Shown: positions 29,005 to 59,025 of the stretch, piece after piece | Layout of the letters: each line of letters opens with the position of its first letter | Position numbering within the stretch: the first letter of the stretch is position 1 | Sequence record: ON190024.1 | Direction: 5' to 3' (one strand) | DNA length: 64,000 bases | Notes under the pieces: generated by a model | The model's input: only the letters and a program-made list of their open reading frames with translations | The model's database searches: none | What the model was told of the DNA's origin: nothing | Position numbers and translations under genes: made by a program

Positions 29005-29535
29005 ATGCCAACTCCTACAACAGGTGCGATTTCAATCGGTACCGTTCGTGATTATTTCAGTAGAACCGGCGCTGCTTCATTGTCTCAGTACTACAGAGGC
29101 GGCGGTATTGTTCCTGATATTACTGAAAATGCTCACGTACCAACTTCAGGCGCGATTAGCTTGAATGACTTGCGCGGTGTATATCGCTTGTCAACGTATA
29201 CGACATCATTTACGACAACATACAACACCACTGTATCAACATCGAATACGACTTCGCGTAGTACATCAAGAAGTACAACTAGAAGTACTGCATACAGTAC
29301 AACTCGCTCGACTGCGTATACTACTAGTTGGACAACTAGCCGAACTACGTCGGTGGCGAAAGGATCGTATACGACCACATACGCAACTTCACGTGCTACA
29401 ACTCGTTCAACTGCGTATAACACGACACGTTCAACTGCTTATACGTCTACATGGACGACATCGTGGACAACGACGTACAACACAACAAGATCAACATCAA
29501 ACACAACTTCTCGAAGCACGCAAGTTGCAGTTTAA
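29005..29535 (+). CDS. Ser/Thr tetrad-repeat protein, putative virion fibre/adhesin
   Basis: AAGGA RBS; N-domain with two GAIS motifs; 26 X-[STNA]-T-[STA]-type tetrads. Confidence 0.8.
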   Translation: MPTPTTGAISIGTVRDYFSRTGAASLSQYYRGGGIVPDITENAHVPTSGAISLNDLRGVYRLSTYTTSFTTTYNTTVSTSNTTSRSTSRSTTRSTAYSTTRSTAYTTSWTTSRTTSVAKGSYTTTYATSRATTRSTAYNTTRSTAYTSTWTTSWTTTYNTTRSTSNTTSRSTQVAV

Positions 29536-29547
29536 CGAGGTTAAATT

Positions 29548-29766
29548 ATGAGCTACAATGAAGAACACGAGAATCGAATCAACGAGCTTGAGTCAAAGGT
29601 TGCAAGGCTTGAGTCGATAATTGAAAATCTGGTTGAGTCTATGACATCAAACAGCGAAGCTATTATCGAACACATTGCATCACTTGAGACCGAGAGAGAT
29701 TCGATTCTTGCATCATATGATGACAAACTTAATGAGATCGTGAACAAATATGAACCCAAGCAATAG
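29548..29766 (+). CDS. small acidic coiled-coil protein
   Basis: GAGG RBS, heptad pattern. Confidence 0.75.
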   Translation: MSYNEEHENRINELESKVARLESIIENLVESMTSNSEAIIEHIASLETERDSILASYDDKLNEIVNKYEPKQ

Positions 29767-30604
29767 AGAAATGACTGGGTTCAATAACATATCTCGCATT
29801 GGTAAGTTGAAATTACAATCCGATGCAGACAACGTCCGTGCCATGTGTATGGACGTTGTTCGTTTATTGAACTCCAAAAATATACCATCCAACTTCGACA
29901 TCAATCACAATGACGGTGGTAACATCGGCGTGCATGAGTGGGTGTCACAAATCCGCTTCATTCACTTGAAATACATGAACGTTAATTTTCAAACGAAGAT
30001 TTTCAAGCATGCCTATCACAACACTGAAAACGTCGTTGACTATTTTGACACGTTCAAACATTCTGATAAATATCATCTTTCGGCGAAGCCTCGATTCCTA
30101 GAATATGAAAACGTCGTATTTCTATGTGGATCGAATGTGCTTGAATTGGCAATTGACTTTGACAAGATTGATGCGTTAGTCGAACAATATCCTGATTTGG
30201 TGATTAAACCTCACCCGATTACGACGTTGTATTACATCAATATGCTTAAATCTAGATATGGTTCAAAGCGAATTCTATCCCAAAAGATCAGTGGTGTTGA
30301 TGTGCTTAAAGCTGCTAAACGTGTTTGGTTGCCTTCAACGTCTGAGTTCTGGTTTAGTGCCTTGAACTACGACAAAGAAATCGGGTTTATCTCTAAAGAT
30401 GGTTTCTGTGGAACGTACACGTCAATCATCAACGCAGTATGGGAATTGCATGAAGAAACCGGTGATCCATTGAAAGATATTGTGAATAAAATTATCTCGT
30501 CACCTTACTCAGGTCTGTATGGTAGTATGGCAGACTTTGAAGAGCATCACGAGAAATACTGTAATGTGATTCTAGAACTAGGGGGTAATTTCGATAATGT
30601 ATGA
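29750..30604 (+). CDS. GT-B glycosyltransferase-like protein (capsule biosynthesis KpsC/KpsS-like)
   Basis: LVIKPHP, then VWLPSTSEFWFSALNYDK resembling the S..G.EAL motif region; alternative start 29771. Confidence 0.6.
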   Translation: MNPSNREMTGFNNISRIGKLKLQSDADNVRAMCMDVVRLLNSKNIPSNFDINHNDGGNIGVHEWVSQIRFIHLKYMNVNFQTKIFKHAYHNTENVVDYFDTFKHSDKYHLSAKPRFLEYENVVFLCGSNVLELAIDFDKIDALVEQYPDLVIKPHPITTLYYINMLKSRYGSKRILSQKISGVDVLKAAKRVWLPSTSEFWFSALNYDKEIGFISKDGFCGTYTSIINAVWELHEETGDPLKDIVNKIISSPYSGLYGSMADFEEHHEKYCNVILELGGNFDNV

Positions 30605-31229
30605 TTATGTAATTCACACTTCGATTAGTGACAAAAGTCAGCTAAACCAACTAGTGATGTTTGTCGGGTCTTTCATCGAGACGCACAAAAAAGGTCGCGT
30701 GGTCTGCGTGACTGATCTTGAACTTGATTTCACGATGCCTCGACTGTCATTTGAGAAAAAACTACCCGAAGAGTACGTTTTCATTTCAGTTGACAATCTA
30801 TTTTTACAAAAAACATACGGCGTTGTTAGCTACATTGACAGTGGTACTTGGCGATGTACTTGGCAAAAGAATGATCATGATGATTTCGTCATTAAAAAGC
30901 ATGGCGAAAGAAGCGGGTTGATTCACCCTGATATTGCAATTGCAAATTACAATGTTTCGAGACATGGCGATCTCGACATGTATTACAACGCGCTTCGTTA
31001 CATTGAGAGCGCAATCACGATCAACTGCAAAGACTTTGCCCCTGCTGCTGAGAATAAAATCAACAGCTTTTACACGCTTGTATTTCCATGGGAGATTTAT
31101 TTTCACGTTATGATCACTTACCAAGAGTATATTGATTCTGAATACGTTGAGCGAGTTCGCGCTAACTGTCATAAGTTCGCACACTCGGTTTATTACAGAA
31201 AATCAGGGTTGTTACGTGATGGGTTATGA
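30597..31229 (+). CDS. hypothetical protein, possibly degenerate GT-A glycosyltransferase
   Basis: N-terminal beta-alpha-beta pattern ending VVCVTD, similar to GT8-type starts; weak. Confidence 0.4.
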   Translation: MYDYVIHTSISDKSQLNQLVMFVGSFIETHKKGRVVCVTDLELDFTMPRLSFEKKLPEEYVFISVDNLFLQKTYGVVSYIDSGTWRCTWQKNDHDDFVIKKHGERSGLIHPDIAIANYNVSRHGDLDMYYNALRYIESAITINCKDFAPAAENKINSFYTLVFPWEIYFHVMITYQEYIDSEYVERVRANCHKFAHSVYYRKSGLLRDGL

Positions 31230-31902
31230 TGAGATAATTTTAGTATCTGGTCTTGATAGTTTAGTTCTATATGAATTTCTTGAACGAAAGCCACACCCTG
31301 TTTACTTTAAATGGGGTTTTGCTATCGACGACATTGAAATGGCTGCTTTGCCTGAAGAAACAACTATCATAGAAATGCCAGAGATTTTGCATTTGAAACA
31401 TGATCCGTATGAGTTCAAGACACCAAGAAATCCCGATTTAATTGGTCGGAATACGTTGATGTTTAACTCAGTTTTCCATGCATTCAGACCAAACGTAATT
31501 TATCGCGGGATGTTGAAAGGTGATGATTTCTATTACGACGCATCGCCTACGCATTCAGATGAAATCGCAGCTATGTGGTCGAAAATGCTGAATAAAGAGT
31601 GTCGAATTGAACAACCGTTTAAAGACAAAACGAAACGTGACATAATGCAAATGGCGGTCGAATACGGTATTGATGCGAATTCATTACAGCATTGTTACAA
31701 TCGAGAACACAACTGCGGTCGATGTAGCAAGTGTGTGGATGCACATGTTAATTCTATGTACACCGACAACCCAGACATCATGTGGCTGAAACGAATAGTC
31801 AATGATTCGGGTATGTCATCAATGGCTAATCACATGTTTGGTGTTGATACAGTTGACAGAATAAAGGAATTTCTAGATGAATTTGATCGAACAGACTGCT
31901 GA
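31219..31902 (+). CDS. QueC-like PP-loop ATPase
   Basis: SGLDS, GRN, YYD, PFKDKTKRDI, CY...CGRCSKC Zn motif; 227 aa; PP-loop lacks one Gly. Confidence 0.75.
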   Translation: MGYDEIILVSGLDSLVLYEFLERKPHPVYFKWGFAIDDIEMAALPEETTIIEMPEILHLKHDPYEFKTPRNPDLIGRNTLMFNSVFHAFRPNVIYRGMLKGDDFYYDASPTHSDEIAAMWSKMLNKECRIEQPFKDKTKRDIMQMAVEYGIDANSLQHCYNREHNCGRCSKCVDAHVNSMYTDNPDIMWLKRIVNDSGMSSMANHMFGVDTVDRIKEFLDEFDRTDC

Positions 31903-32770
31903 TAAATTCGAGCATAGTTACCGAGAAGACGTTCAAGGCGTACAGTGGTATTTCGGTAGTCGAACGCATGATTTTTATCTGTATGGAATAGACTCTCTTA
32001 TTGATAAAGTCAAAGACTGTGATTTTATTGAAATCAAGCATGTTCAAGAGGGTACGCTGGTTAAACGAGGCGAAGCTGCGGTCACGGTTACGATTACAGA
32101 TCATAGTCGTATCGCATATGGGAACATGATTGAAACATTGTTGTACAATGAGTTGTGGTATTCGAGCACGGTCGGTACGATTTTACATCGTTGTCTTGAT
32201 GTGTTGCATGAAAACGGCTATGACGCTCGTTCAGCATACCCTCAAATCGGACGGGCGAGTTCAACGCCAGAACAGTCAGCTAAAGCAAGGGATGTGTTCG
32301 CACGTATATTTTATCAATCGTCGAATGAGAAAATACCCGTTGCGATGCACAGTGATATTTTAATCAACGGTGAGGAATATTGCATGGAACATTATAACGG
32401 CATTATGATTGATACTTTCGATAAGCAAGCTTGCATTGACTTGATCAACAAGAAAGACTTTCGAGGGACTGTGATGGTTGACTCTCAGCCAATAATTGAA
32501 ACAATTGAGAAAGTTCTAGCTGAAACAAAATGCTTTGTTGCACAAGCTGAAAGTGTTACACTCGATGAGTGGATAAAGATAGTGCGACATTTTAAAGGCA
32601 ATAAGCGAATTTTCTACGGGATTGGTAGCTTTGCATTTAGCAATATATCACGAGACACATTTGGTTTGATTTACAAAGTGTGTGCAGTTAAGAAAAACGA
32701 CAACTGGATCGGAGTTTCAAAGATGACGACAGGTAAACAAACATCGGCTGGTTATAAGGTTATAGGTTAG
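31877..32770 (+). CDS. compact NAMPT/NAPRT-like type II phosphoribosyltransferase
   Basis: aligns by eye to NAMPT at 35934 (EGT, ET....LWY..TV, IDTFD, DS, YGIG, RDT, KM...K...AG). Confidence 0.75.
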   Translation: MNLIEQTADKFEHSYREDVQGVQWYFGSRTHDFYLYGIDSLIDKVKDCDFIEIKHVQEGTLVKRGEAAVTVTITDHSRIAYGNMIETLLYNELWYSSTVGTILHRCLDVLHENGYDARSAYPQIGRASSTPEQSAKARDVFARIFYQSSNEKIPVAMHSDILINGEEYCMEHYNGIMIDTFDKQACIDLINKKDFRGTVMVDSQPIIETIEKVLAETKCFVAQAESVTLDEWIKIVRHFKGNKRIFYGIGSFAFSNISRDTFGLIYKVCAVKKNDNWIGVSKMTTGKQTSAGYKVIG

Positions 32771-32772
32771 TT

Positions 32773-33762
32773 ATGAATTATTGTATAGCGCCGTTTACAT
32801 CGCCGTCTATTACACCAGACGGTTTTAAAATTTGCAGCATGCCAGGTCAGAAAGTATACCCTGATATTTCATTCTGGAATAGTGATGAAGTGATCAAGAT
32901 TCGCGAACAGATTATCGCTGGTGAAATTCCTGAATCGTGCAAGGCATGTCGTAGTATGCGTGACGGGTTGATTGTGTCAAAAGAAAAACCAACTGATACT
33001 CATGTTGACTTGAATTTCAAAGCTCTTTACATTGCGCGGTCGAACAAGTGTGAATATGCTTGTGAAATGTGCAGTTCATCAATCTCACATAGCTATGACA
33101 AGAAATACAATGACGGTAAGTTGGGGATTATTGAGAATGACTTTGATGTTATTCCGTATCTGCACGAAACACAAGCCGTTGCTATTTCGGGCGGGAACCC
33201 TGTCATTGACAAAAAGGTTGCAGAGATTCTTGAGAATCTAGACCCTGACGTGGTAGAACGTTTCATTATTACTTCAAATGGGACAGTCTTTCCAGACAGA
33301 TTCTTGAATGCAATTAAGAGATTGAAATGTGACGCGACTTTGATATTCTCTATGGACGGACCGAAAGAGTTTAATGAAGTGGTTCGATCTGGTGCGAAGC
33401 AAGAGAGAATCTATCGCACCATTAATCGAGTTCTTGACGAGATTGAAGATTACCCAAACTTGCATGTGGCAATTGAGTATACTTTCACGAATAAGTCAAT
33501 TCATCACTACGTTGATTTGTATGATGAAATGCTCTTCGAGATCAACCCGAAGCATTTGAAAAACAACTCAGTTAAAGTGATTGCGAATATGTGTACATAC
33601 CCGCATCACCTTAGCGTTACAACTGTTCCCAAAACCGTCATTGATGACATATTGTTCAATCAGTTGCCATATTTGAGACAGCAACCCAGCCCATTGTCAA
33701 ATCAATTCAAACTTGGCTATGATAAGTTTTTGACTCAGTATCACAACAGCGTGATTATGTGA
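32773..33762 (+). CDS. radical SAM protein with N-terminal twitch domain
   Basis: C.APF...C...WNS...IRE...CKAC then CEYACEMC, GGNP, SMDG. Confidence 0.85.
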   Translation: MNYCIAPFTSPSITPDGFKICSMPGQKVYPDISFWNSDEVIKIREQIIAGEIPESCKACRSMRDGLIVSKEKPTDTHVDLNFKALYIARSNKCEYACEMCSSSISHSYDKKYNDGKLGIIENDFDVIPYLHETQAVAISGGNPVIDKKVAEILENLDPDVVERFIITSNGTVFPDRFLNAIKRLKCDATLIFSMDGPKEFNEVVRSGAKQERIYRTINRVLDEIEDYPNLHVAIEYTFTNKSIHHYVDLYDEMLFEINPKHLKNNSVKVIANMCTYPHHLSVTTVPKTVIDDILFNQLPYLRQQPSPLSNQFKLGYDKFLTQYHNSVIM

Positions 33763-34879
33763 TCAGATCATACGCTTTGATATGTGAGTAAAACTCTGGA
33801 CACGCAGACGATAAATTAGTTTTCGTCTTCGTGTCTATTCTTTTGTTAAGAACAAAGAATTCAGGGTTGAATTTACAAACACTGTGTTCCAGAGTAAGAC
33901 ATTCAGCAACGTGCTTAAATGGTCTAGCCAAATCCTCACGCCCATCTTTTAAATACGCTTCTTCTTTCACTTTGAATCTTGATAATAGCTGGTCTCGAAA
34001 TGCAACTGGAATGTTGTAAATTGAGTATGGATTATCAGGCTCACCGACGACATGCACAGACAAACGTACACGTTTACCATCATAAAGCGAATCAAAATCT
34101 GAAACCAATGTTTCAAGATGTTCAAGAGTCACGTTTGACACGGTCGCAGTGATAACTACATCAAAGTGTTGCTTGATGACTTCAATGTTTGATTTGACTT
34201 TTTTGATGTCTGCAAACAATCGAATATAATCTTGGTATTCTCGTAGACCGTCGATTGATACGAACACCGTTGATGCATTAGCTTCTTTAAGCGATTTGAT
34301 GAGATCTGAGCCATCGGCTAACACTAGTGATGAGCCATTCGTGAAAATATTCACTGCGGCTTTAATGTCGCCTACGTTGCGAAGAACTTCAGGAGCATTT
34401 GACGAGCGGGTAATTTCACCGCCTAGAATTGTCAATGACGAAAGTCCTTTGCTGATTGTGTTGATTGTCGTACTCAAATCATTGAATCGAGTACTTGAAT
34501 CTTCTTCATTGAACAATCTAGCTTTCAAGTCTGATAATTTGCTGTAGCAGTAACGACAAGCTTGGTTACATTCATTACTAGGGAATACTTGTAGCCAGCG
34601 AACTGAATCAGCGGGCATAATAGGTGAAACTTCAGAATCGTGTTCTGTTAGACGCTGTGGGTCATTATCAGTGATGCACATTTGACATGCCTTTGACAGC
34701 TTGCTCATGTCGTGGTTTAGCATTGCTTCACGATAAGCGACAAGCTTTTCATCATTCCAAGCGTCTGCTAGTGTTTTTTCATCAGTAAACCATTCATAAT
34801 CAGCCGAACAGCAAAACGTAATTTGATTGTTTGCTCGTGTGATGAACTGCTTGAACGGCATATAACATAGTGGTTTCAT
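33755..34879 (-). CDS. radical SAM protein with N-terminal twitch domain
   Basis: CYMPF...CC...WN...YRE...CQMC then CNQACRYC, GGE, SIDG. Confidence 0.85.
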   Translation of the reverse strand: MKPLCYMPFKQFITRANNQITFCCSADYEWFTDEKTLADAWNDEKLVAYREAMLNHDMSKLSKACQMCITDNDPQRLTEHDSEVSPIMPADSVRWLQVFPSNECNQACRYCYSKLSDLKARLFNEEDSSTRFNDLSTTINTISKGLSSLTILGGEITRSSNAPEVLRNVGDIKAAVNIFTNGSSLVLADGSDLIKSLKEANASTVFVSIDGLREYQDYIRLFADIKKVKSNIEVIKQHFDVVITATVSNVTLEHLETLVSDFDSLYDGKRVRLSVHVVGEPDNPYSIYNIPVAFRDQLLSRFKVKEEAYLKDGREDLARPFKHVAECLTLEHSVCKFNPEFFVLNKRIDTKTKTNLSSACPEFYSHIKAYDLIT

Positions 34880-34889
34880 GTTTCTGTCC

Positions 34890-35462
34890 TTAGTTAAAAA
34901 TGCTACTTGTATATATAGCAGTCTTCAGAGCATTGAAATGATCGTCAACTCTATTCACGTGTATGCATTCAATGTCAAATTTTTCTTGGATTTCTCGGAT
35001 GTTGTCTAGCGAGTCGTCGATGAAGTATTTCACCTCATGCAGTTCACACAGCTTCTCAACATATTTTGCCTTCGAGTCGAAGTACTCAATCGAAATCACC
35101 TCACTTATCATCCCTGGGAATAACGCATTTAGATTATGCACGCGATTTGACCATGAAGTTCTACTCATGCTGAACTTGGTTAGTGCAATGATGTTATACC
35201 GGTCTGAGAGTTCGCGTAACGCATCGTAAGCGTCTTCATATGCGGGTATGTACTTTGCACACTCATGTTCATTGTATGCACCTATAAGCTTGCCTAGCTG
35301 CATGTCACTCACGTTAATAAATAAAGAGCGTGCATCGGTATCAGTATTTGAACCGTTGATATTCAAATTATCAAGCATGCCTAATTGCATCATGAAGAAT
35401 GGCAAGTTGGCTTTCCAGTTAAGCAAAACCCCGTCTACATCTATGATGATCGTCTTTTTCAT
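34890..35462 (-). CDS. HAD-family phosphatase (5'(3')-nucleotidase-like)
   Basis: IIIDVDGVL, FIDDS. Confidence 0.85.
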   Translation of the reverse strand: MKKTIIIDVDGVLLNWKANLPFFMMQLGMLDNLNINGSNTDTDARSLFINVSDMQLGKLIGAYNEHECAKYIPAYEDAYDALRELSDRYNIIALTKFSMSRTSWSNRVHNLNALFPGMISEVISIEYFDSKAKYVEKLCELHEVKYFIDDSLDNIREIQEKFDIECIHVNRVDDHFNALKTAIYTSSIFN

Positions 35463-41138: not shown

Positions 41139-41162
41139 AAAAGGGAGCACTAAGCTCCCTTT
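41137..41162. terminator. bidirectional terminator
   Basis: AAAAAAGGGAGC-actaa-GCTCCCTTT between convergent genes. Confidence 0.8.
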
Positions 41163-41163
41163 C

Positions 41164-42216
41164 TCATTTCACCATTTTGATTTGAATCTGATTGTCCATG
41201 TAAGCCATTTTCTTTTCAAATTCAACATCATATTCTGGTCGATGTTCGTATTCGACTGAAAGCATTTGCTTCAGACAACGGTACAATTCCGACTTGTAAT
41301 ACCCTTCTTTCATTCCCTTCATCTGTTCATATTGCTTTTTCATAGCAGCTTTGATTATCTTCGGGTCCATGAATTTGATTGACATTTCTCGCGGTGCTTT
41401 TACTGTGCCAAAGTCAACAAACACCTGAGCCTTTTCAGCTACTTGAATGAAGTCATAAATCGTGTCATAACTCATTCGACTTAGCGTGTGGTGCATACAA
41501 ACATGTTTGCTATGTTCTTTTAGCAACGGTACATTTGCAAGCATCAAGTCGTGGTCGATGTTCTGACGAATGTATTCGTTGCGCTCTTTTCCGCCGTCAC
41601 ATGAAATTGTAAACACTAGACGATGTTTGTACTTTTTACATATGGCTAGAATCTTCTTCGCAAGTGGCGTATGCAACACAGTACCATTTGTCAGAATGTA
41701 AACTTCCGCATTTGTTTCTTCCATGACTTCAGTCAGAACTTCGACTGTTCTCTTGTCCATGAACGGTTCGCCGCCGTATAGCACAACAGTTTCAACACCC
41801 TTCGGGATACTGAAATCGAGTTGTGTGTAATCGTAATGGTCGTCAATGTCATACAAGTCCATGTATGTTTTGCTATTCTTGCCATAGCACATTCGACACG
41901 CTAGGTTACATTTGTTTGACATCAATATTTGAATTGTTCTAGGATGCTCTTCGAGTGCTTCATATTCGAAGTACTTCTGATCAGACAATTCGCCATAACT
42001 CATACATTCTTTGCAGTATTCTGGTAAAGTGTCATACTCAAACATTTTGGCACGATGTTCATTGATGATGTCACTGTGCCACCAGTCTTCAACGTTCGGG
42101 AATGGTTCACTTAGCTGAGAACAGCAAATGTGATACCCATCAGGTTTTGCGTCACGTGTATTAAAGGGAGAGCCACAAAGTGGTCTCTTCCCGTCTTTAA
42201 ATCCGAATTTATCCAT
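41164..42216 (-). CDS. radical SAM protein with N-terminal twitch domain
   Basis: CGSPF...CC...WW...HR...CKEC then CNLACRMC, YGGEPF, TNG, SCDG. Confidence 0.88.
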   Translation of the reverse strand: MDKFGFKDGKRPLCGSPFNTRDAKPDGYHICCSQLSEPFPNVEDWWHSDIINEHRAKMFEYDTLPEYCKECMSYGELSDQKYFEYEALEEHPRTIQILMSNKCNLACRMCYGKNSKTYMDLYDIDDHYDYTQLDFSIPKGVETVVLYGGEPFMDKRTVEVLTEVMEETNAEVYILTNGTVLHTPLAKKILAICKKYKHRLVFTISCDGGKERNEYIRQNIDHDLMLANVPLLKEHSKHVCMHHTLSRMSYDTIYDFIQVAEKAQVFVDFGTVKAPREMSIKFMDPKIIKAAMKKQYEQMKGMKEGYYKSELYRCLKQMLSVEYEHRPEYDVEFEKKMAYMDNQIQIKMVK

Positions 42217-42488
42217 TAATCTAGCTCATCAAGAAGTGATTGAAATTCCTCGTCGCGTTCAGCGTCGATTGTACCAGTCATCAACTCTGTTAGAGTCTTC
42301 AACGACTTGATCTCTGGTGGTTGAGGGCGTAGATCTTCGAGAATGTGAATGATTGACTCGGCTGGGAGGTCGTGATTTACGATCTCATCTGGCAGGTGGT
42401 GTTTGTAAACGCAGTCGTCGCCCCAATCAATAACTACTGCATGTTCCCATTTGTCGATTTCTAGTATTTTAAAATTTGGTTTCATCAT
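42216..42488 (-). CDS. small acidic hypothetical protein
   Basis: ATGA-coupled to the glycosyltransferase gene. Confidence 0.7.
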   Translation of the reverse strand: MMKPNFKILEIDKWEHAVVIDWGDDCVYKHHLPDEIVNHDLPAESIIHILEDLRPQPPEIKSLKTLTELMTGTIDAERDEEFQSLLDELD

Positions 42489-43486
42489 AAGCCCCAGAGT
42501 TCTTTCCAATGTGTTTTAGCATCTTGTCGATACTTCTCAATGTCAAATTTTTGATATTTCTGTTCGATTGCATCATCAATGACGCGAATCAACGTATCAT
42601 TGTTTATATCAGCACGAATCACTGGGAAAATAAAATCCCGTGTGTAAGGTGCATCATGCTGAACAATACAAGGTATGTACTGACATGCTTCTAATAACGC
42701 ATATGGCATAATCTCGATTCGTGACATGTGAAGCAAAACTTTACTTTTCATCATATGTGCTATGACTCGCTCACGCCGTTGACAAGTTTCGACTATACAA
42801 TCAACCCCATTCGGGATTCTTATTGATTCGGTTGTGAATAGACGAATTTTAAGACCGCTGTATGCAAGCGCGTTTAGCATTTCGGGTATCTGCTTACGTT
42901 TGTATGCACCTGACACGATAATCACGTCAGACGCTTCAGCAGCGTCAATATCAGCTTGTGATATAGACGGAAGCTCAAATGGTTCAAATGCAGTCACATG
43001 TTTGCCACCGATTACTTCTCGACCCCATTGTGCAATCCCGTTCGATTGAGCAATGTTAGTGACTAATGACGTTGACATCATGTGTCGCCATTGAGGTAAG
43101 TTGTAAATTTGATGAATGTCCATGTATTCGCGATATGAATCTGGTACTATCAAGTCACCGAAATGATGTTGGTTGTAACAACGGCGCTTCGCTTCGATAC
43201 ATGCGCGGAGTGCTTCATATGAATGCGTATAGATAATCGCTTCGCTATCAATCGCGTTGATAACCATTGCGTTTGCCTTGTAGTCTTTATAAGACCGTTT
43301 CGTTAAAATGAAGTCACACCCGAAATCCCATTTACTCACGTGTGGACACGATTCGTCTCCGAGTACAATAACTTTGACATCACAGTTTAGTGATTGCATT
43401 AAACGAACGTGATCTTGAATGAATGTGTAAATACCGCCGCCAATCCCTAACATAAAGTCAGTTACTACGTAGCGAACTTTTTTCAT
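42485..43486 (-). CDS. GT-B (GT4-like) glycosyltransferase
   Basis: GIGGGI N-terminal motif, KRKQ, SRIEIMPYALLEAC (E-x7-E). Confidence 0.8.
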   Translation of the reverse strand: MKKVRYVVTDFMLGIGGGIYTFIQDHVRLMQSLNCDVKVIVLGDESCPHVSKWDFGCDFILTKRSYKDYKANAMVINAIDSEAIIYTHSYEALRACIEAKRRCYNQHHFGDLIVPDSYREYMDIHQIYNLPQWRHMMSTSLVTNIAQSNGIAQWGREVIGGKHVTAFEPFELPSISQADIDAAEASDVIIVSGAYKRKQIPEMLNALAYSGLKIRLFTTESIRIPNGVDCIVETCQRRERVIAHMMKSKVLLHMSRIEIMPYALLEACQYIPCIVQHDAPYTRDFIFPVIRADINNDTLIRVIDDAIEQKYQKFDIEKYRQDAKTHWKELWGL

Positions 43487-58989: not shown

Positions 58990-59025
58990 AAAAGGGAGAG
59001 TAACAGTTGTACTCTCCCTTTTTTT
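58990..59025. terminator. bidirectional terminator
   Basis: AAAAGGGAGAGTA...TACTCTCCCTTTTTTT between convergent genes. Confidence 0.85.

Follow-up and report, generated by a model that had tools for sequence, protein, structure and literature searches.

Two convergent genes for radical S-adenosylmethionine (SAM) enzymes overlap at their ends within the window analyzed here, a 64,000-nucleotide stretch of sequence record ON190024.1, and they raise the question of what each enzyme acts upon and whether the two act together. One gene, rSAM-A (the KVP40.0260 orthologue), encodes 329 amino acids (aa) and occupies positions 32773 to 33762 of the plus strand; the other, rSAM-B (the KVP40.0261 orthologue), encodes 374 aa and occupies positions 33755 to 34879 of the minus strand. 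The window is DNA of Vibrio phage PVA8: over the 6.5 kb around the pair it matches that phage, position for position, at 100% identity, and it shares 98.8% identity with KVP40. Both phages belong to the genus Schizotequatrovirus of the family Straboviridae, PVA8 being KVP40-like, and the annotation of the two genes goes no further than "MoaA/NifB/PqqE family" or "radical SAM domain-containing protein." We propose, as a reading that has an even chance of being right, that rSAM-A is a two-cluster tailoring enzyme, of a chemistry that we infer, in the glycosylation or maturation of a Ser/Thr-rich repeat protein and that rSAM-B is an accessory paralogue.

rSAM-A belongs to a recurrent module with a Ser/Thr-rich repeat protein

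rSAM-A is part of a module that comprises one or two Ser/Thr-rich proteins with a period-4 repeat, rSAM-A itself, and a protein resembling the nearby gene product 0256. At least eight phage lineages, with two or more unrelated backbones among them, carry the module, which stood beside tail fiber genes in five lineages; the eight lineages were counted at no more than 80% rSAM-A identity and are 41 to 80% identical in pairwise comparison. Within the window, the repeat protein is 0254 (KVP40.0254; positions 29005 to 29535, plus strand), which is built of (S/T)(S/T)(R/Y/W)(S/T) repeats and is a candidate substrate or acceptor. A scan of IMG/VR added nine rSAM-A orthologues on marine viral contigs (L018 to L026; 46 to 53% identity), and in 9/9 a 0256 homologue lay directly downstream of rSAM-A. 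Two genes upstream on these contigs encode Ser/Thr-rich proteins with four-residue repeats (RSTS, RSTT, YTTS, and WTTS) in the same style as the product of 29005 to 29535, and genes for QueC-like, NAMPT-like, HAD, and rSAM-B proteins were undetected there (tblastn, E<1e-5). Moreover, the module on the marine contigs lies between tail fiber genes, whose products, 889 and 1762 aa long, gave PHROG tail fiber matches, and genes for endolysin, terminase, and portal proteins.

Repeat proteins were screened with a 60-residue window holding at least 55% Ser plus Thr and at least 12% Arg, Tyr, or Trp, followed by a test for period 4. The screen flagged a repeat open reading frame (ORF) in all 19 module loci that had an upstream flank (18 related loci and the window) and in none of 71 loci of distant paralogues with the same N-terminal-twitch (N-twitch) architecture. 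In the 64-kb window, 0254 was the sole flagged ORF among 51 long ORFs, and in every flagged repeat protein the Arg/Tyr/Trp positions recurred with sharp periods of 4 and 8. The earlier note on this DNA had guessed in passing that the repeat protein or sugars might be substrates, a guess that fits the linkage of rSAM-A, while the substrate itself we infer.

Some of the marine repeat proteins (L018:5514-6491, L019:5664-6590, L020:5488-6516, and L023:5317-6426) continue past the repeats into a Gly-rich linker, a Cys residue, and a domain of ~150 aa that closes in THN or NHN. This terminal domain of the first marine repeat protein gave weak, subthreshold matches to Hint_2 and Intein_splicing, and judged by its sequence the domain is probably self-cleaving.

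The same linkage could arise if rSAM-A were a maturase in the manner of those that process ribosomally synthesized and posttranslationally modified peptides (RiPPs), acting on the period-4 repeats while 0256 independently decorated the same protein. Its chemistry would then be, for example, C-alpha epimerization, Arg/Tyr/Trp cross-linking that staples a beta-ribbon, or Ser/Thr oxidation. The strict and subfamily-specific co-occurrence with the repeat protein is consistent with such a maturase, as is the fact that most characterized SPASM/twitch enzymes modify peptides, with SkfB, CteB, SuiB, and anSME among the nearest structures to rSAM-A. Moreover, an extra Cys, C274, is invariant in the rSAM-A subfamily and could donate a hydrogen atom as in radical epimerases, and the Hint-like self-cleaving domain on one marine repeat protein looks precursor-like. 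However, no RiPP recognition element domain was detected in a Pfam search, which returned the radical SAM core alone; the repeats contain no Cys, which excludes thioether chemistry; and the recurrent partners across the wider family are glycosyltransferases, including covalent fusions to glycosyltransferase family 8 (GT8) domains. The neighboring candidate substrate is a repeat protein of 119 to 373 aa, not a short precursor peptide of the RiPP type. We regard direct maturation of the repeats as possible but rather doubtful.

Partner genes point to a possible transfer of an acidic sugar

The gene 0256 (positions 29750 to 30604, plus strand), the constant companion of rSAM-A, encodes a protein resembling retaining GT-B glycosyltransferases of the beta-Kdo and sialyltransferase types (Kdo being 3-deoxy-D-manno-oct-2-ulosonic acid), with a weak GT52 match and with G-x-N, KPHP-x-T, SE, and SS-x-x-SG motifs that are invariant in eight homologues. 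An HP motif is typical of transferases that use cytidine monophosphate (CMP)-activated ulosonic acids. An AlphaFold2 model of 0256 was built from 8 sequences, with a mean confidence (pLDDT) of 78, and it was matched best by two retaining beta-Kdo transferases, WbbB and KpsC: Foldseek gave an E value of 7e-5 for WbbB, and VIA gave Z scores of 10.1 (KpsC) and 9.1 over ~215 residues. KrkA and sialyltransferases ranked next in the structure searches. 0256 shares its modeled fold and the HP motif with WbbB (GT99), KpsC (GT107), and KrkA but differs from them in having no detectable sequence similarity. From the model and the motif, we take 0256 to be a predicted transferase whose sugar would be Kdo or an acidic sugar related to it.

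In the window, the core of the module is extended by further genes. Directly after 0256 comes 0257 (positions 30597 to 31229, plus strand), a possible GT-A or GT8-like nucleotide-sugar transferase; this is a weak lead, as the atlas neighbors of its low-confidence model were GT8-like folds at template modeling (TM) scores of 0.44 to 0.51, and both the L008 and the L013 module conserve the gene. Next are a QueC-like PP-loop ATPase (KVP40.0258; positions 31219 to 31902, plus strand) and a shortened phosphoribosyltransferase resembling NAMPT and NAPRTase (KVP40.0259; positions 31877 to 32770, plus strand). Beyond the radical SAM pair, a HAD-like protein related to T4 gp30.2 is encoded at positions 34890 to 35462 on the minus strand, co-oriented with rSAM-B, and the HAD gene accompanies the extended module even where rSAM-B does not (L008:13601-14188). 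The closest relative of rSAM-A outside the genus, P0005 (558 aa), carries a QueC-like domain fused to the N terminus of an rSAM-A orthologue (61% identity), a fusion found in the lineage of L008 to L010. Along the P0005 contig, the genes run repeat protein, 0255, 0256, 0257, the fusion, the NAMPT-like gene, and a HAD gene in convergent orientation, with no rSAM-B.

A combination of similar enzymes is known from bacterial capsules. For the K13 capsule of Escherichia coli, ribosylation dependent on phosphoribosyl pyrophosphate (PRPP) is followed by the action of a HAD phosphatase, beside a Kdo transferase, in the synthesis of Ribf-Kdo capsules (PMC12887879). Genes for a PRPP-type transferase and for a HAD phosphatase are likewise part of the KVP40-type module. 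The phage PRPP enzyme, however, has the NAMPT fold rather than the GAPT fold of the capsule enzymes, and the capsule systems act on a lipid-linked glycan and include no radical SAM enzyme, whereas the phage acceptor is likely a phage protein.

The extended gene set also suggests a different route, in which rSAM-A, the QueC-like, NAMPT-like, and HAD proteins make a free, modified nucleotide or nucleoside and the repeat protein is unrelated. The logic would resemble that of toyocamycin (a radical SAM enzyme, a QueC-type ligase, phosphoribosyl transfer, and dephosphorylation), and the product would serve DNA or RNA modification or counter-defense. The QueC-like::rSAM-A fusion speaks for this route, as do the order QueC-like, NAMPT-like, rSAM-A, which is kept in three lineages, and the position of the genes near nadV. 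On the other hand, the nine marine contigs encode rSAM-A, 0256, and the repeats with neither a QueC-like nor a NAMPT-like gene detected at the threshold given above, and thus the nucleotide genes are an add-on rather than part of the core. Moreover, KVP40 encodes a genuine 7-deazaguanine (preQ0) pathway (FolE, QueD, QueE, QueC, DpdA, and QueF) elsewhere in its genome, with KVP40.0284 as the true QueE (PMC8056088), such that the QueC-like gene considered here is a second, different enzyme, and rSAM-A reached just 29 bits with QueE models, for which the cutoff is 206. We conclude that a free-nucleotide route is improbable.

In phage QD01, the corresponding region has yet another gene for a sugar transferase, an RfaF-like heptosyltransferase gene (L007:9253-10428) inserted between the 0263 homologue and nadV. 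Relatives of the module vary in further genes, which encode a MobA-like nucleotidyltransferase (L013:11068-12402), a weakly fructosamine-kinase-like protein (L008:12266-13642), and a weakly UDP-GlcNAc 2-epimerase-like protein (L013:13280-14365); these genes suggest lineage-specific sugar activation.

rSAM-A and rSAM-B have an N-terminal-twitch radical SAM architecture

The earlier note had observed that in both proteins a C-x-x-PF...C...W...R...CxxC module precedes the CxxxCxxC core, and the alignment of the three paralogues in the window, rSAM-A, rSAM-B, and a third, rSAM-C, bears this out. In rSAM-A numbering, C4-x2-P7-F8, C21, W35, R44, and C56-x2-C59 stand ahead of C93-x3-C97-x2-C100, and all of these residues are invariant among the three. 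The seven Cys residues (four N terminal and three in the core) are also invariant in 66 homologues that an exhaustive profile search supplied. In rSAM-A, the four N-terminal Cys residues are spaced C-x16-C-x34-C-x2-C, much as in twitch enzymes with one auxiliary cluster, such as BtrN (C169, C187, C232, and C235). We predict that the N-terminal domain, with its four Cys residues, probably binds an auxiliary [4Fe-4S] cluster that is fully ligated, of the type that accepts electrons in oxidative radical reactions, and that the CxxxCxxC cluster would cleave SAM.

Profile searches placed the proteins in a family of this architecture. Both passed the gathering threshold of Pfam Radical_SAM (PF04055; 37.8 and 45.4 bits against 29.5). 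Comparison with the twitch-domain family, which the earlier note had suggested, gave a mixed result: alignment to the NCBIfam model N_Twi_rSAM (NF033640) was nearly full length, with rSAM-B residues 2 to 365 on positions 2 to 396 of 398 and rSAM-A residues 2 to 294 on positions 3 to 330, while the scores of rSAM-A (118.6 bits), rSAM-B (127.9 bits), and rSAM-C (134.6 bits) all fell under the cutoff of 170. The KVP40 genome encodes three N-twitch copies and one unrelated weak radical SAM match, and none of the four reached 170 bits. Like members of N_Twi_rSAM, the window proteins place a Cys-rich twitch- or SPASM-like domain first and the CxxxCxxC core second; they differ in that, at 119 to 135 bits, they represent divergent branches found almost wholly on uncultured, apparently viral contigs. 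The N-terminal 84 aa of rSAM-B aligned to positions 1 to 66 of 67 of SPASM (PF13186) at 19.2 bits (E value of 0.0015), below the threshold of 21.5, and rSAM-C scored 14.9 bits; rSAM-A gave no SPASM match. In tandem-fused homologues, the equivalent domain matches SPASM at an E value of 7.5e-23. The profile search itself returned ~20,000 homologue clusters, of which the best 150 were mostly from uncultured, apparently viral contigs, and a profile scan of genome contigs with the paralogue alignment gave a single match, on a 2-kb Endomicrobiaceae contig. Several homologues, P0010, P0012, and P0037 among them, are chains of 700 to 1076 aa with two or three tandem N-twitch radical SAM modules.

The AlphaFold2 model of rSAM-A was of high confidence (pLDDT of 94.3; predicted TM score of 0.91). 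Its core matched those of BlsE (Z of 15.3), MoaA (14.3), and SkfB (14.1), with SuiB, viperin, CteB, anSME, and DesII also near and the Z scores effectively tied; the core alone was matched, and no solved chain spanned the whole model (TM of ~0.45). With BtrN, BlsE, MoaA, SkfB, and anSME, rSAM-A and rSAM-B share a similar radical SAM core (Z of 13 to 15 for the rSAM-A model), a four-Cys C..C..CxxC auxiliary domain, and presumed electron handling, but the auxiliary domain is C terminal in those enzymes and N terminal here. As the earlier note had stated, the family is one without an assigned function: a literature search found no paper that assigns a function to the N-terminal-twitch architecture. 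We conclude that, as far as sequence can tell, rSAM-A and rSAM-B are intact, predicted two-cluster radical SAM enzymes and belong to a branch of the N-terminal-twitch family that has expanded in phages.

Two public labels assign other identities. According to the first, a published DefenseFinder label, these proteins would be viperin-like enzymes making chain-terminating nucleotides; weak matches to pVip hidden Markov models and the entry "Viperin pVip 2.6e-4" on an rSAM-A orthologue (PMC12028318 Table S8) are its basis. The matches are limited, however, to the first 100 to 140 positions of the generic radical SAM core, with those from PADLOC ending at profile position 104 to 152 of 257 to 262; the scores were 24 to 41 bits against a cutoff of 180; and viperins have no N-terminal cluster domain. 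A viperin identity is thus scarcely credible, and we treat the label as a false positive because of the partial coverage and low scores. The second label, queE_1 (GenBank MN794232), was also rejected, both for the score on QueE models given above and because it reflects a partial match to the generic radical SAM core.

rSAM-B is an accessory paralogue, and the overlap probably reflects gene packing

The description of rSAM-A and rSAM-B as divergent paralogues is supported by their shared architecture and 24% identity. BLAST comparison with the 150 best profile hits put rSAM-A, rSAM-B, and rSAM-C in different subfamilies. The rSAM-A subfamily included P0005, P0006, P0007, P0008, P0009, P0011, and P0023 (31 to 61% identity), while relatives of rSAM-B among those hits came from Schizotequatrovirus only; a word-index protein search with rSAM-B returned three close relatives only and was uninformative on the wider family. 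The gene is confined to Schizotequatroviruses of Vibrio. Between KVP40 and the clade of phage 6E35-1a, identity was 28% for rSAM-B as against 55% for rSAM-A, 51% for the NAMPT-like protein, 52% for the HAD protein, and 86% for NadV. Moreover, the rSAM-A orthologue is reported as a core gene (18/18 genomes) with a ratio of nonsynonymous to synonymous substitution of 0.0066, three recombination events, and a minimum identity of 50% (PMC12028318 Table S8).

Among cultured phages, rSAM-A was present in 35 Vibrio phage records and rSAM-B in 31 at the same threshold (E<1e-20), with rSAM-B undetected in D479, D480, D484, and D525. In D525 (OZ195947.1, L012:9000-10200), the N-terminal half of rSAM-B is out of frame and is interrupted by several stops, but both rSAM-A and the 257 aa at the C terminus of rSAM-B are intact; the defect is an apparent frameshift, and a sequencing error is possible. 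Orthologues of rSAM-A without rSAM-B also occur in the L008 lineage and on the nine marine viral contigs. We conclude from these comparisons that rSAM-B is a fast-evolving, dispensable accessory paralogue lying between the module and the HAD gene.

At the junction itself, both ORFs are intact and the 8-bp overlap of the convergent genes at positions 33755 to 33762 is as the earlier note described it: rSAM-A stops with TGA at 33760 to 33762 and rSAM-B with TAA, the complement of TTA at 33755 to 33757. No terminator-like site was found there by a terminator scan, and the RNA fold of the junction was not more stable than that of shuffled sequence (z = -0.45), in agreement with the claim that a terminator is absent. 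The further claim that other convergent junctions carry bidirectional terminators also held, with hairpins GGGAGC/GCTCCC at ~41143 to 41160 and GGGAGAGTA/TACTCTCCC at ~58994 to 59019. Both places, 41139 to 41163 and 58990 to 59020, lie between convergent genes and show a GC-rich hairpin set between an A-run and a T-run, a clear bidirectional terminator; the consensus terminator scan overlooked the former. Scans for sigma-70-like promoters and terminators gave no excess over shuffled controls, and the T4-type late promoter TATAAATA was not found in the region from 29 to 44 kb. The overlap is also 8 bp in phage QD01 (~76% DNA identity) and is 6 bp in the 6E35-1a clade of Vibrio crassostreae phages; in phage F86, rSAM-A and rSAM-B also converge, but with ~190 bp between them.

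One interpretation of this arrangement, which the earlier note had offered, is that rSAM-A and rSAM-B perform consecutive steps and that, possibly, antisense RNA arising across the overlap, where no terminator stands, couples the expression of the two. Consistent with such a pair, convergent abutment is kept in two Schizotequatrovirus clades, the junction differs from the others in being without a terminator, and radical SAM proteins themselves account for 25 of the 132 neighbors of 37 nonredundant distant paralogues. The last figure indicates that clustering of N-twitch radical SAM genes is common. The occurrence of rSAM-A without rSAM-B in other lineages, the divergence of rSAM-B, its frameshift in D525, and its failure to be detected in 4 of 35 records together argue that the two are not a dedicated pair, and the spacing in F86 also counts against this interpretation. 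We consider a dedicated pair coupled through antisense RNA very unlikely, and the claim of sequential steps is not supported. We conclude that the 8-bp overlap is probably gene packing, of a kind to be expected in any compact phage genome.

rSAM-C and the wider family are linked to sugar enzymes and fiber genes

rSAM-C (the KVP40.0272 orthologue, 350 aa) is encoded at positions 41164 to 42216 on the minus strand, and its glycosyltransferase-like partner, 0274, which is annotated in KVP40 by PF00534, is encoded at positions 42485 to 43486 on the same strand. The stretch from 41164 to 43486 holds rSAM-C with a 90-aa ORF and 0274. No similarity was found between 0256 and 0274, such that the partners of rSAM-A and rSAM-C are different types of transferase. 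The nearest relatives of rSAM-C were fusions of a GT8 domain to a radical SAM enzyme (P0014, P0020, P0022, and P0025); GT8::N-twitch fusions make up four to six of the best 150 profile hits, and one lies among further GT8 genes. Relatives of 0274 (L098:5064-6047 and L099:545-1606) are each flanked by two N-twitch radical SAM genes, and in L098 the resulting group of radical SAM, glycosyltransferase, and radical SAM genes stands between two tail fiber paralogues, with a Caudo_TAP fiber-assembly gene adjoining.

A similar association has been described in pelagimyophages, whose host-recognition cluster contains unexplained radical SAM gene cassettes and GT8 genes among the tail fiber genes (PMC7029224). 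These cassettes resemble the relatives of rSAM-A and rSAM-C in their tail fiber neighborhood (PMC7029224). The reports differ in giving no family, partner, or function for the radical SAM genes, and the link to a repeat protein and a Kdo-transferase-like enzyme is not mentioned (PMC7029224).

Discussion

The linkage described here can be accommodated by a model in which rSAM-A belongs to a mobile three-part module composed of the repeat protein or proteins, rSAM-A, and the CMP-ulosonic-acid transferase-like 0256. In the model, 0256 would O-glycosylate the repeat protein on its Ser/Thr face. A radical step coupled to redox chemistry, such as an oxidation, epimerization, or decarboxylation, would follow, in which rSAM-A would draw on an auxiliary cluster that is fully ligated and would act upon the acidic sugar, once transferred, or upon the donor of that sugar. 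Less likely, rSAM-A would act directly on residues of the repeats. The additional enzymes of KVP40-type modules (the QueC-like protein as an ATP-dependent carboxylate ligase, the PRPP-type transferase, the possible GT-A enzyme, and the HAD phosphatase) would, by analogy, add amide and ribosyl decorations, and the PP-loop ligase could amidate the sugar carboxylate. rSAM-B may add a further tailoring step. As to what rSAM-A would act upon, a sugar is the leading candidate, though at somewhat less than an even chance, a protein is a tentative one, and a free-nucleotide pathway is an unlikely one.

Several points weigh against the proposal that rSAM-A tailors a glycosylated repeat protein. Gene linkage cannot separate action of a radical SAM enzyme on the sugar from action on the protein, and the structural neighbors of the rSAM-A core include sugar and nucleotide enzymes as well as peptide enzymes, at tied Z scores. 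The model of 0256 is of moderate quality, given its few sequences and its pLDDT, and a Z score of ~10 is not overwhelming. Related T4-like phages can also keep a common gene order where no function is shared. Finally, the virion proteome of 6E35-1a lists no abundance for the repeat protein, rSAM-A, rSAM-B, or rSAM-C (PMC12028318 Table S8), which is weak evidence because trypsin would shred the repeats.

If the proposal is true, the N-terminal-twitch family would gain its first substrate, and a host-recognition protein would undergo radical-SAM-dependent modification directed by a cassette that is exchanged between unrelated marine phages. We suggest, tentatively, that the module is a phage system not described before, in which a radical SAM enzyme would covalently mature a phage-encoded, Ser/Thr-rich fiber or adhesin protein, by way of a glycan or directly, and through which the modifications known for phage surface proteins would be joined by one of a novel type. 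It would also explain the cassettes of radical SAM and glycosyltransferase genes in the host-recognition regions of marine myophages. Two public annotations are to be corrected, as rSAM-A and rSAM-B are neither viperins nor QueE. One subfamily of N-twitch enzymes now has a concrete substrate hypothesis, founded on a co-inherited repeat protein and a Kdo-transferase-like enzyme, and because KVP40-type phages are culturable and well studied, that hypothesis is a practical one to test.

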